Positions 2,054 to 60,765 of a stretch of DNA of 64,000 nt are shown piece after piece. How positions within the stretch are numbered: the stretch's first letter is position 1; each line of letters begins with the position of its first letter. Position numbers and translations under genes: made by a program. The notes beneath the pieces were generated by a model. That model saw only the letters and a program-made list of their open reading frames with translations. It ran no database searches and was not told the DNA's origin. This stretch comes from Setoptus koraiensis (taxonomy: Eukaryota; Animalia; Arthropoda): assembly GCA_048013815.1 (NCBI GenBank), contig CM106586.1, positions 23,374,001 through 23,438,000 on the forward strand. The letters run 5' to 3'.

Positions 2054-3379
2054 CTATTTTCCCGACAATCTAAGTGATCGTCTAGATGATGGTTTCTGTT
2101 GAGACGCATATCTACCAACCATTCGGCTGGGTGATTTAAATGATACTTCATGTTGTTTAGTCACCGGCGAAGAATGGGGCGTATTCATTCCAAACATGCC
2201 GGAAATGTTGTTTCGAAATACAAAAAATAGCGCTATACCAGCTAGGCTTAAAACAAACAATATCACCACTATCACTATGATAAGTGTTCTTGTATTTTGT
2301 TGGATTCGTTCTCGATCATCTAAAATTCCCGGTATTTCTTCCTGGTAGCGGGGATATCTATTAATGTCTGGCTGGTCTCCCTCAATGCAATTGAACAGCA
2401 ATTTTAAGTCCTGCTTTTCTGTTGGTTTCACTATAAGTCTAGATAACCACCAGTTCCTCTCGTCATCGCAAACAACCTTCATTCTGTTGTTATCTGGCGA
2501 AGCTATTGCTGGCCCGACTATGTTGGCCTTTTCAGGTCTCTTTGGCACGAATTCTGGTTGTATGTCAATGAATTTGAATGTATCTCTTGCCTTCAGTACC
2601 GCCTCATCGAATAAAACACCAAATACGTCTTCCCTAAGATATTTAATCGATGTGCTATTAGTTAAATCAAATTCAAGATAAACAGGTCTTCCATATGGCT
2701 GGGACATGGTTGCTTTATACCGAACAAACGCGTCAAGAGAGCCTGGCTCAAATGTATCATGTGTAATTTTACCAAAAAAGTATACTCTCATATCCTTTAA
2801 TTCTTTGTCATTCACATTTTCCTTTTTCCCTCTGTAAGGATACTTAATAGTCATAAAATCTTTTTCAACTTTGCCCAATTTAGTATTTGCTTCAACTTCA
2901 TAATAAAACCTCTCTATATAATTGAATCGAAACAAATCTTTCTTCAGTTTAATTAAATTTGAACTACCAATAAATATGCCGATCATCTTGTCACTTTCCT
3001 TAGTATTTGAATGAAACGTTCCATCTGGCTCTTCTCTGTGAATATGGTCACATTTAAGATTTCCTAAAACAGGAAGTATAAAATTACAATATTCTTCACA
3101 TTCATAATCTGAGAGAAATTGACAGCCTGCTGATTTTCTTCTCGTCTCAAATATCCATTGCTCTTTGTTATCTAAATCGATTATTTTTTCTACTCCATCA
3201 CCAAACTTCTCACAATCTGTCCCATATTTCCCAGATTCCGTTCTATCTGGATATTTATTGCAGGGTCCAATCCATTGTCCTAGAGGCTTTTTAGAAATTC
3301 CCAAATATGCATAGACCTCTACAGACATTACTAAAACATGAAGCACTACACTAAGAAATAGCGAAATAGTCGGAGCCAT
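2054..3379 (-). CDS. Uncharacterised type-I membrane protein, family member A (441 aa, intronless)
   Basis: Long ORF with a hydrophobic N-terminal signal peptide (MAPTISLFLSVVLHVLVMSVEVYA), Cys-containing ectodomain, one C-terminal TM helix (LIIVIVVILFVLSLAGIALFFVF) and a Ser/Arg-rich tail. In-frame TGA five codons upstream of the ATG supports this start. Aligns to 4480-5763 and 59380-60765. Confidence 0.9.
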   Translation of the reverse strand: MAPTISLFLSVVLHVLVMSVEVYAYLGISKKPLGQWIGPCNKYPDRTESGKYGTDCEKFGDGVEKIIDLDNKEQWIFETRRKSAGCQFLSDYECEEYCNFILPVLGNLKCDHIHREEPDGTFHSNTKESDKMIGIFIGSSNLIKLKKDLFRFNYIERFYYEVEANTKLGKVEKDFMTIKYPYRGKKENVNDKELKDMRVYFFGKITHDTFEPGSLDAFVRYKATMSQPYGRPVYLEFDLTNSTSIKYLREDVFGVLFDEAVLKARDTFKFIDIQPEFVPKRPEKANIVGPAIASPDNNRMKVVCDDERNWWLSRLIVKPTEKQDLKLLFNCIEGDQPDINRYPRYQEEIPGILDDRERIQQNTRTLIIVIVVILFVLSLAGIALFFVFRNNISGMFGMNTPHSSPVTKQHEVSFKSPSRMVGRYASQQKPSSRRSLRLSGK

Positions 3380-4479
3380 TCTTTTAAACTTTCACGGTGA
3401 TTCCTGTATGCTTGATAGTGATACTCTGTCAGGGTGAGTTATTTTGTTCGTTGGTTGACACAGATGAGTGATACTATTCTTGCATCAAACAAAAGCTAAT
3501 GTTAACATCCGTTGTGGAAAATGACAGTACAAATCGGAATAGCCGATGTAGCGTTATACTGTCTTTTGTATTCGATCTGAATATCACAAGAGCGCGCGAT
3601 CCCCTTACAAAATTGTTTATCAATCAATGGTATTGCACCCGTGTGAGTAGATATTCGCACAATGCCTGGCAAAAACTAATACCTGCCCTCGGACTTGCAA
3701 TCTTGCATTTGTGCGCATCTTGTTCAACTGACTGATGTGCACCAGAAACGTCAGAATTTTTACAATCAAATTCAGCACTAATACATGTAGGATTGATTGT
3801 GAAAACCACAGCGTTTTTTGATTTGCATCGGCAGAACAAAATGCGCACAAATTATCGCAAATTCGCAAAATCAATCAAAGGACTCTACGGTCTCCACCAA
3901 GCCAACCGATTGACAGAGATTTATGGCAAGGCAGCGAGGAGTGTGGCGATAATTTAATTGTACGTTAAAGTTTTGATTCCTTGTCTCATGTGCCAATAAA
4001 TTATAATTACATTTAGGTGGATTGAGCGCTTGAATATGTCGCTGCATTGGTGGCATATTTTTTTCTTTACAGCCCTTTGATCTAACCCGTTGATAATGTT
4101 GTGTTATGGGATGATCGTTGATATGGCATGGTAATGATTAGTATATTGTGTTTGACATCAACTGTAAGCGACAAACGTAACCATGCAAACTGTTGGCTCT
4201 ACTTGGAAGTTTTGGCGGTGAAGTTTTCATAAAGAGAAGATGAGCAAATAAAAGAAAATAATCAGTTTTATTCTAATTATGCAACTGTCAGGTAACATCA
4301 ATCTATGTGAATATCAGTGATCATAAAAGATTGCCAATGTACTCACCTCGTTCCAGATTGACACTTCAAACAGTCGCGTTGTAGCTAGATTGGCTACAAT
4401 TAGCTCGCTAATTGGCCTTATTTTATCAATCTTATATCGATCTAAGCGATCCAACCGTTCTTTTAGAAGAAGACTTGTG

Positions 4480-58411: not shown

Positions 58412-59379
58412 GAAATCTCCACTCCAGATGCGATGGGTGTTTGGACATGCATGGATATCCAACGATATTCAAATCCGTATCCAGTGGGGATATCCAAGCG
58501 CGTTCCATACACAACGTAAGATTCTGGCTGTATATGTTTCTGGTGTGTCATCCTCGAGCCATGCCCCTGTTTCACGGAATGCGATTGTTTGTCGATGATG
58601 TTGTCAGATGCACAAAAAAACGACTTATCATCTGAACCAACCATGATCGCAGTTGCTGGTTTTTTCCTCACCTGCATTTGACCCATCGCAAACCTTCTAT
58701 ATTTCATCTTTCGCAATCCTTTCAAACAGATCATTTGCCTTTTGAGCAGCTTTCCGTGTTGTTTGTCTCATCATGCTCCATTTTCGTTTGACAGTTGTTT
58801 TTCACCCGTCCATGTAATTAACTAAACTCACACCTAAGCATGTTAACAGATGCTGAAAAAATATTTTCTGATTTTCGGTGCCTGCTTCTCTCTGACTGCT
58901 TGAATAGGTAAGATTTACAAGGTAAACTGGGTGATCTTGTTACTTAACTAATCGCAAAGTAAACTGGAGATGAGTTTGGATATTCACATTAGATATCTAA
59001 ACGCATCTCTAGTCTGCACCGACGAATGGGACAAATACAGTTGCGTCAGATGATGGTTCTACTTTTTCAACGTTGAAATAATACTTGTGAATACTTGTGT
59101 GATCCAAGAGGCTCGTTAGTGTGACTATGAAAGCGGCCATCTGATAATAATAAAAAACAAAATAGTTGATGAAGTCATCGATTGACAGTTGCAGCTGTCG
59201 GTTGATCGCGCGCATCGCGTAAAATAAAGTACCCAACATCTAATCATTCATCTTGTCTCTCACAGAGGATACAAAAGACAACTATTAACAGAAGCTACAT
59301 CACGCGTGTTATGTCTTATATCTCACAATACATAATCAACAACAATAAGGCAGCGACCAACCTCGTTTGACAAAGCACC

Positions 59380-60765
59380 ATGAAGAAATCGCCAGGAAAA
59401 TCAAATAGAATACCCTCGATAGTTTTGGTATTTCTCACAGTATCAATCAATTCCTTCTTGCTGGGCGTAGGCTATGCAGACACTGGTTCCCCCATCGTAC
59501 CACCTTCACCAGGACAATGGATTGGTGCCTGCAGAGCATATCCGTCAGGAAGGCAATATATTGACCCAAGCTCATCTTGTGCGTCATGGGGTCAACTGAA
59601 AAGATTTAGCAAGGATGTCGTTAAACATGATACTTATTATGGTTTTGGAGAGGTGTGGTCGTTTTCTAACGGCGCGGATATAAATAAATTACGGTCATGT
59701 GATATACATTGTATTCGAATACTTGCTTACTCCGAATATTGGGATGAAGAAAGTTCGATCAATAGGTTGTCAGAAGAAGATGGATACAATCACAAAGATG
59801 CTGAGATTAGTGACAAGCTGATTGGCGTTTTCGTTGCTAAATCTAACTTAGCTGAGTTGAAGAAAAATACGTTCACATTTTATTATCTTGAAAGGTTCTA
59901 TTACGAGGTAAATAATGGCACTGCATTGAGTAAAGTTGAAAAAGATTTTATTGTTATTAAGTATCCCTATAGGGGATATATGGCTGAACAACCAACAATA
60001 AGAGATAAACTAAGAGTTATGAGAGTATACTTTTTTGGTAACATTACACATGATACATTCGAAGCAGGTTCACTAGATGCGTTTGTTCAGTATAAAGAAA
60101 CAATGTTGCAGCCATATGGTAGGCCTGTCTTTTTTGAGCTAGATTTATTAAAAAACGATTCGATGAAATATCTGAGAGAGGACGTGTTCGGAATCTTATT
60201 CAATGATGAGGTATTCAAGACAATAGATACATTCACTTTCACCAAAATATACCCGCCATATGTACCACCACGACCCAAGAGTATGGAAAACAATACCGGG
60301 CCAGCGATAGTTTCGCCTGATCACAACAGAATGAGAATCGTTTGTCAGGATAGTAGAAACAATTGGTTAGCTAAGCATATAGTTAGACCAGGTGGTCATC
60401 GTGAGCAAAGATTGCTATTCAAATGCATTGAAGATGATAGTATCGAGGACATCAATTGGTATGAACCCTTGGCAAAACAATCTTCAACATTTATAATAAT
60501 TATAGTAGTGGTAACAGTGGTAACAACGACTATAGTCGTTGTTGGTATTAGTGTTTATCTTGTATTACAACAAGAGACATCAGCATCGATCATCAACATT
60601 AATACTAACGAACCAAACAAAACACTTTTAGATGATAATAGCATACAACGTCCGGCCTCAACAGGCATGTACAGAGTTCCAGTTTATTTGCCATCTAGTA
60701 ATGCTAAAAGGGAACTCTCTATCCAGAAGACTCCGTCTGGGAGATCGACCAAAATCCTCTACTGA
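59380..60765 (+). CDS. Uncharacterised type-I membrane protein, family member C (461 aa, intronless)
   Basis: Signal peptide, GQWIGAC..YP, conserved central domain (ERFYYEV, KYPYRG, YFFGNITHDTFEAGSLDAF, QPYGRPV, YLREDVFGILF, GPAIVSPDHNRM), TM helix (FIIIIVVVTVVTTTIVVVGISVYLVL). A more distant paralog of members A and B. Confidence 0.9.
   Translation: MKKSPGKSNRIPSIVLVFLTVSINSFLLGVGYADTGSPIVPPSPGQWIGACRAYPSGRQYIDPSSSCASWGQLKRFSKDVVKHDTYYGFGEVWSFSNGADINKLRSCDIHCIRILAYSEYWDEESSINRLSEEDGYNHKDAEISDKLIGVFVAKSNLAELKKNTFTFYYLERFYYEVNNGTALSKVEKDFIVIKYPYRGYMAEQPTIRDKLRVMRVYFFGNITHDTFEAGSLDAFVQYKETMLQPYGRPVFFELDLLKNDSMKYLREDVFGILFNDEVFKTIDTFTFTKIYPPYVPPRPKSMENNTGPAIVSPDHNRMRIVCQDSRNNWLAKHIVRPGGHREQRLLFKCIEDDSIEDINWYEPLAKQSSTFIIIIVVVTVVTTTIVVVGISVYLVLQQETSASIININTNEPNKTLLDDNSIQRPASTGMYRVPVYLPSSNAKRELSIQKTPSGRSTKILY

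Follow-up and report, generated by a model that had tools for sequence, protein, structure and literature searches.

A lineage-restricted family of predicted single-pass membrane glycoproteins with a divergent tip and a partly homogenised base in Setoptus koraiensis

Three intact genes and the predicted layout of their products

We analysed 64,000 nucleotides of DNA from the arthropod Setoptus koraiensis (GenBank assembly GCA_048013815.1, contig CM106586.1, positions 23,374,001 to 23,438,000 of the forward strand, read 5' to 3'), a stretch that is referred to below as the window and whose positions are counted from its first letter. It carries three related genes, here termed A, B and C, each of which codes for a predicted membrane protein with a signal peptide, a strongly divergent N-terminal part (the tip), a membrane-proximal conserved module, a transmembrane (TM) helix and a C-terminal tail. 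The genes and their parts are as follows:

2054-3379, minus strand: gene A, 441 residues, intronless, with signal peptide, tip, conserved module, TM helix and tail
2996-3280 (tip), 2354-2995 (conserved module) and 2216-2287 (TM helix), minus strand: parts of gene A, whose product ends in a basic Ser-rich tail of 53 residues
4480-5763, minus strand: gene B, 427 residues, counted from the ATG that aligns with the start of A
5380-5682 (tip), 4735-5379 (conserved module) and 4597-4668 (TM helix), minus strand: parts of gene B, with a tail of 38 residues
59380-60765, plus strand: gene C, 461 residues, a distant paralog
59512-59808 (tip), 59809-60462 (conserved module) and 60481-60567 (TM helix), plus strand: parts of gene C, with a tail of 65 residues

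A and B form a tandem pair with a period of 2.38 kilobases (kb), with C at a distance of about 54 kb on the opposite strand. The open reading frame (ORF) of B extends upstream to a GTG at 5808, and its tail is 15 codons shorter than that of A on account of a TGA at 4480-4482, past which codons homologous to the tail of A run in frame to about 4435. Neither frameshifts nor internal stops interrupt any of the three genes, and tblastn searches with all three proteins found no fourth copy or fragment of the family in the window.

Each of the three products starts with a hydrophobic signal-like segment that is followed by small residues (VYA in A, SDA in B and GYA in C), a call made from a hydropathy scan and by reading, with no dedicated predictor. 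Towards the C-terminus there is a single hydrophobic helix of 24-29 residues (residues 365-388 in A, 366-389 in B and 368-396 in C), and the tails beyond it have net charges of +9, +7 and +3, respectively, with Ser and Arg together making up 20-37% of their residues. In the alignment of the three proteins the tip, at 95-101 residues, is only 23-27% identical between paralogs and retains four invariant Cys residues, one pair of them as CxxxC, along with a few invariant Gly, Trp, Tyr and Pro residues; the motifs kept in all three are GxWxGxCxxYP, Cxx[FW]G and CxxxC. The conserved module of about 215 residues is 60-76% identical, has two invariant Cys residues, and displays a series of well-preserved motifs, namely SDKxIG, E[RK]FYYEV, YPYRG, YFFGxITHDTFExGSLD, QPxGRPV, YLREDVFG, GPAIxSPDxNRM and LLFxCIE. 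A conserved NxS/T sequon immediately precedes YLREDVFG, with its position in C offset by one residue. Between the conserved module and the membrane, A and B share an acidic juxtamembrane insert of 14 residues that C lacks. No internal repeats were found in the proteins, and the count of beta versus alpha hydrophobic moments (50-58%) is uninformative on secondary structure.

Thus, the proteins combine a signal, one C-terminal TM helix with a positively charged cytoplasmic side, and an ectodomain bearing six invariant Cys residues and a sequon, which makes them, by predicted topology, single-pass type I membrane glycoproteins with predicted glycosylation and disulfides. A preliminary description of this DNA had reported the three genes as sharing a signal peptide, an ectodomain, one TM segment and a Ser/Arg-rich tail, with an N-terminal part far more divergent than the remainder. 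This account was borne out in full: the ORFs were re-found with exactly the same boundaries and strands, the layout recurs in all three, every motif that it listed is present in the alignment, and the level of identity falls as sharply between conserved module and tip as it had claimed.

The divergence from C provides a measure of long-term constraint, with all estimates of selection given here coming from these three sequences of one genome. Over the 214 codons of the conserved module, the replacement (dN) and silent (dS) substitution rates are 0.288 and 1.18 for A against C and 0.275 and 1.19 for B against C, so that dN/dS is about 0.23 in both comparisons; the uncorrected ratio of replacement to silent differences per site (pN/pS) comes to 0.39-0.40 (bootstrap intervals 0.30-0.52). 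The conserved module has been under long-term purifying selection since C split from A and B. Such a dN/dS, together with the presence of ORFs of 427-461 codons in DNA with a guanine-plus-cytosine (GC) content of 37-40%, shows that these are not chance frames, and the three genes are intact, under selection and members of a family confined to one lineage.

Exchange and divergence between the paralogs

We then compared the two members of the tandem pair along their length, using silent positions and shared codons. Three blocks define the pattern:

2216-2884, minus strand: recently homogenised tract in A, partner of 4597-5268 in B
4597-5268, minus strand: recently homogenised tract in B, partner of 2216-2884 in A
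3337-3406 in A and 5721-5790 in B, minus strand: 5' block common to both, 70 nucleotides at 80% identity, covering a leader of 27 nucleotides and the first 14 or so codons

The homogenised tract comprises the conserved module without its N-terminal third, together with the juxtamembrane segment and the TM helix; the silent-site breakpoint is near alignment column 190 (around residue 166). Third-position identity between A and B is 0.9-1.0 in columns 225-405, 0.67-0.77 in columns 150-225 and 0.14-0.55 in the tip. The weak alignment of the tip can be avoided by restricting the count to residues that are identical in both proteins and asking how many of these use the same codon. The codon is shared at 7/8 of these residues for the signal region and at 12/22 for the tip; within the conserved module the counts are 31/41 for the N-terminal third and 110/115 for the remainder, and they come to 37/37 for the juxtamembrane segment and TM helix and 14/16 for the tail. 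The tip differs from the 3' part (12/22 versus 147/152) with a Fisher p of 2.5e-7. The maximum chi-squared method likewise placed a breakpoint between A and B at column 190 (37.2, permutation p <= 0.0005), and gave none that was significant for A-C or B-C. Furthermore, the same-codon fraction in the tip is practically the same for A-B (0.55) as for B-C (0.57), which indicates that the A and B tips have been diverging from each other for as long as from the tip of C.

At the nucleotide level, blastn aligned 2120-2995 of A with 4501-5379 of B at 86% identity. Apart from this and the 5' block, the DNA of A and B can be aligned only at the codons of GxWxGxC, and neither the intergenic DNA nor the promoters align. 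The 5' block and the 3' tract thus place the divergent tip between stretches of similarity on both sides. The tandem pair is therefore a mosaic, made by gene conversion or some comparable exchange. The simplest reading of this arrangement is that the tandem duplication is old and that gene conversion has recently acted on the 3' two-thirds of the gene and, to a lesser degree, on its 5' end, with the tip being spared; a recent duplication combined with a foreign tip imported from another member of the family would yield the same picture. The sparing of the tip by conversion is suggestive, and leans toward the idea that the tips are diversifying.

Rates of change in the tip itself are high. Its dN is 0.77-1.07 and its dS is at saturation; the uncorrected pN/pS of the three pairs is 0.77 (0.57-1.07), 1.31 (1.00-1.77) and 0.79 (0.63-1.02), values affected by saturation in both site classes. 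At replacement sites the divergence of the tip exceeds that of the conserved module by a factor of 2-3. Judging from the alignment, the residues of the tip other than those of the scaffold, as well as its length, have changed almost freely.

Within the homogenised part of A and B (columns 225-420), replacement differences number 38.7 and silent ones 7.3, giving a pN/pS of 1.44 with an interval of 0.75-4.2; this is well above the long-term value and does not differ from 1 (Fisher p = 0.35). When polarised with C, the derived replacements number 10 in A and 11 in B, and this even split indicates that neither copy is decaying alone. The high ratio in the homogenised part may stem from redundancy after homogenisation or from selection for differences. 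In the comparison of 2216-2785 with 4597-5166, we also observed that replacements far outnumber silent changes: the juxtamembrane and TM segments show about 11 amino-acid differences, and yet every one of their identical residues is encoded by the same codon.

The preliminary description had gone on to propose a diversifying tip on a constant stalk, the latter being our conserved module. The comparison by domain upholds the difference between the two parts, in that divergence of the tip does exceed that of the stalk, and the proposal thereby survives the refuting condition set for it, a tip evolving no faster than the stalk. Selection for change may underlie this divergence; a pN/pS of 0.77-1.31 would also be expected from relaxed constraint on a disulfide scaffold. 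The stalk is constant over the long term, with its dN/dS of about 0.23, but shows no visibly strong constraint over the short term within the A/B pair, with its pN/pS of 1.44.

Relatives, comparable systems and competing readings

No relative emerged from any of the searches that were conducted, in keeping with the earlier statement that the proteins contain no recognisable domain: Pfam, PDB, profile, ESM Atlas and contig scans were all without one. Pfam searches with the whole proteins, the conserved module and the tip returned only sub-threshold matches that differed between the paralogs (Psg1, Srv, Adeno_E3, DUF7318, Protocadherin and Lipocalin), and sequence and profile searches of PDB gave no relevant match. 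Searching 5.8 billion clusters by word index, with C as query at the default threshold and with the ectodomain alignment at E <= 10, yielded no match, and neither did an exhaustive profile search with HMMER against 1.84 billion representatives at E <= 0.001. The exact sequences of the three proteins and of two neighbouring ORFs are absent from a collection of 15 billion proteins. ESM Atlas gave no usable match for the conserved module. Finally, scans of metagenome, viral (2.9 million) and prokaryotic contigs with the conserved-module alignment recovered no relatives, and these empty scans argue against recent horizontal transfer. A search of the literature turned up no account of a family like this one.

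Three candidate affinities were considered and rejected. The first, to the Ricin B lectin or beta-trefoil domain (PF00652), arose from ESM Atlas searches with whole proteins, where the score was only 0.76-0.77 and below the reliability marks (95 and 87 shared features; recognition 1872); there was no Pfam match to this domain at E <= 10 on either the tip or the conserved module, and no internal repeat. The second, to the C-type lectin-like domain, was prompted by the 'WIG' in GQWIG. This WIG lies at the very N-terminus of the tip and not mid-domain, and there was neither a Pfam match to the domain at E <= 10 nor a PDB profile match. The third was to Psg1/Ykl077w (PF14610), a fungal family of type I membrane glycoproteins whose topology is the same as that of A, B and C. 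This match was seen in one paralog of three, at 13.4 bits against a curated cut-off of 30.1 (E = 0.07), and aligned residues 249-391 of A, TM helix included, with the C-terminal half of the model; searched by itself, the conserved module gave nothing. We regard the match as fortuitous and due to the TM helix.

The reach of these searches can be calibrated with a neighbouring gene, a Kelch-repeat ORF, whose best matches were kelch-like protein 10 of Dinothrombium tinctorium (39% identity) and a protein of Tetranychus urticae (41% identity). The proteomes of both species are hence in the library, and are without a detectable relative of the family; a proteome of a closer relative appears to be missing from it. 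Accordingly, 'orphan' is to be read here as a predicted absence beyond a certain sub-lineage of mites. Arthropod genomes commonly contain membrane-protein families that are restricted to one lineage.

In the absence of homologs, comparison with known systems has to be one of arrangement. The tandem paralogous receptors TLR1 and TLR6 of mammals offer the closest parallel, as in these genes conversion keeps the last leucine-rich repeats (LRRs), the TM segment and the TIR domain alike and the N-terminal parts diverge (Kruithof et al. 2007, PMC2077338); nine species provide independent documentation of this conversion, and the partners that the two receptors bind are known. In common with them, A and B are tandem paralogs of predicted type I topology in which conversion would have kept the C-terminal part of the ectodomain, the TM helix and the downstream region similar, with the N-terminal part, on the ligand side in the TLRs, being divergent. 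Unlike them, A and B gave no Pfam match to LRRs or a TIR domain and show no kinship to the TLRs in sequence or domain, and they represent one pair in one genome. More generally, the family resembles recognition receptors in having a signal peptide, a variable distal part on a Cys scaffold, a conserved proximal part, one TM helix and a short non-catalytic tail, whereas the Pfam, PDB and profile searches place it in no family of that kind. Moreover, the well-studied receptors with variable domains are defined by positive selection on the variable part, whereas here the tip has the pN/pS values near 1 given above.

The reading that we favour, and hold to be probable by a modest measure, is that A, B and C would constitute a family of surface proteins with a partner shared through the base and an N-terminal module specific to each paralog. 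The proteins would reside on the surface of the cell or in a membrane that faces a lumen, where the conserved module together with the TM helix and tail would engage a partner common to all paralogs. This partner might be a co-receptor, another molecule of the family in self-association, or an adaptor recruited via the phosphorylatable basic Ser-rich tail. The N-terminal module would in turn provide a different binding specificity in each paralog. As the proteins have no enzymatic or known signalling domain, any signalling would have to go through partners. If this reading is correct, the genes would represent an unrecorded protein family with two extracellular modules lacking relatives among about 1.8 billion representative proteins, and another independent case in which gene conversion in tandem receptor genes has produced a variable tip on a homogenised base; they would also be candidate surface molecules for recognition processes, which are almost unstudied in mites. 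A bolder proposal, which we think unlikely, is that a mite lineage has invented a new extracellular fold as a polymorphic recognition receptor for a partner, gamete, host or pathogen, with selection keeping the tips distinct, conversion keeping the partner-binding module, TM helix and tail uniform, and more members lying elsewhere on the chromosome.

Several observations weigh against assigning specificity to the tip. Its pN/pS is indistinguishable from 1, and its variability may therefore reflect a lack of constraint; in the A/B pair the supposedly constant part is itself without visibly strong constraint at present, its pN/pS being 1.44. Since conversion tracts stop passively once identity becomes low, the sparing of the tip need not reflect selection, and the number of sequences behind every selection estimate is small, as stated above. 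AlphaFold2 models built from the three-sequence alignment are of low confidence, with a mean predicted local distance difference test score (pLDDT) of 29.4 for the ectodomain and 33.2 for the conserved module alone, and the tip and stalk are thus modules defined by conservation and not by structure.

In the main rival, the tip would be a loosely constrained spacer or shield, pinned by disulfides and tolerant of almost any sequence, and the conserved module would do the work. The paralogs would then be equivalent, serving in adhesion, in trafficking or as chaperone-like partners of a membrane protein, and their divergence would be drift. We regard this as a real possibility, albeit a doubtful one. 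It accounts well for intervals of tip pN/pS that reach or include 1, for the several indels in the tip and for the confinement of all strongly conserved motifs to the membrane-proximal module, and positive selection cannot be demonstrated from the three sequences. What it does not readily explain is that four Cys residues and about ten other positions of the tip have stayed invariant despite saturated divergence, which points to a folded, retained element, and that the length of the tip has been held at 95-101 residues. The conversion between A and B, moreover, has wiped out divergence on both sides of the tip and not within it.

Of the two minor rivals, the stronger holds that these are shed or secreted effectors, for instance salivary ones, with a transient anchor, whose ectodomain would be released onto a host or partner and whose tip would track a fast-evolving target. 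The acidic juxtamembrane insert of A and B could conceivably act as a cleavage-accessible linker in such a scheme, but the TM helix and a basic tail of 38-65 residues are kept in all three proteins, and by eye no furin-type R-x-[KR]-R site can be read in the ectodomains; we deem it quite improbable. Still weaker is the notion of domesticated envelope-like glycoproteins of a virus or retroelement, which would fit a signal peptide, a glycosylated ectodomain, a TM helix and a short tail encoded without introns. Against this capture, no long terminal repeats, terminal inverted repeats or other repeats flank the genes, and the stretch 1-8000 contains no inverted repeats and no repeats besides the two copies of the gene; the vicinity is free of gag, pol and transposase ORFs and made up of ordinary host genes (Kelch, ABCC, OSCA/CSC1-like and cathepsin L); and neither the viral contigs nor the 1.84 billion protein representatives contain a match, making it very improbable. 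A reading as chance frames or as pseudogenes in decay, which is already rejected in the case of A and C, is hardly credible, for against the loss of the last 15 codons of B to a stop and a short-term A/B pN/pS of about 1 or higher stand three long frames that remain uninterrupted in AT-rich DNA, the low dN/dS of the conserved module in two independent comparisons and the even split of derived replacements.

Genomic surroundings

The other features of the window that bear on the context of the family are as follows:

128-1303, plus strand: KLHL10-like Kelch-repeat ORF, tail to tail with gene A and outside the family
42366-42865: assembly gap of 500 N, between the A/B pair and C and outside all three genes
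42881-47050, minus strand: large single-exon ABCC transporter ORF
52804-55258, plus strand: OSCA/CSC1-like channel, a neighbour
56031-56741, plus strand: cathepsin L-like gene, a neighbour

The Kelch ORF confirms the KLHL10-like neighbour of the preliminary description, its best matches carrying the name kelch-like protein 10. From this gene the description had drawn a hint of a reproductive role; adjacency is the sole link of the family to reproduction.

The assembly gap has AT-rich DNA with few ORFs on its left, and on its right, 15 nucleotides away, the stop codon of the ABCC ORF; it matters only for the true linkage of A and B to C at about 54 kb on one molecule. The ABCC-type transporter as a whole occupies 42881-48317 on the minus strand as two long ORFs (1389 and 367 residues) and is hence nearly intronless, with its 3' untranslated region unread at the gap. 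No ABCC fragments lie next to the family genes in this window. On the other side of the gap, 8000-42365 is a tract of about 34 kb that is AT-rich (GC 17-29%) and runs up to the gap, with no ORF of at least 150 residues; its GC skew is persistently positive, G-runs are scattered along it (for example at 10480-10510 and 10960-11200), and Tandem Repeats Finder reported no tandem arrays in it at a score of at least 200.

Two further ORFs adjoin the family. One, at 61077-62630 on the plus strand, begins 312 base pairs past the stop of gene C and codes for a protein of 517 residues that has a signal peptide and is hydrophobic at its C-terminus; it belongs to no Pfam family and has no other copy in the window by tblastn, and it is a second orphan membrane or secreted protein beside a member of the family. 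The other, at 5993-6946 on the plus strand, codes for 317 residues with a Cys-rich N-terminal hydrophobic anchor and a long Ser/Asn-rich tail, and belongs to no Pfam family. It is arranged head to head with gene B, with 230 base pairs between the start codons, and the two genes may share a bidirectional promoter.

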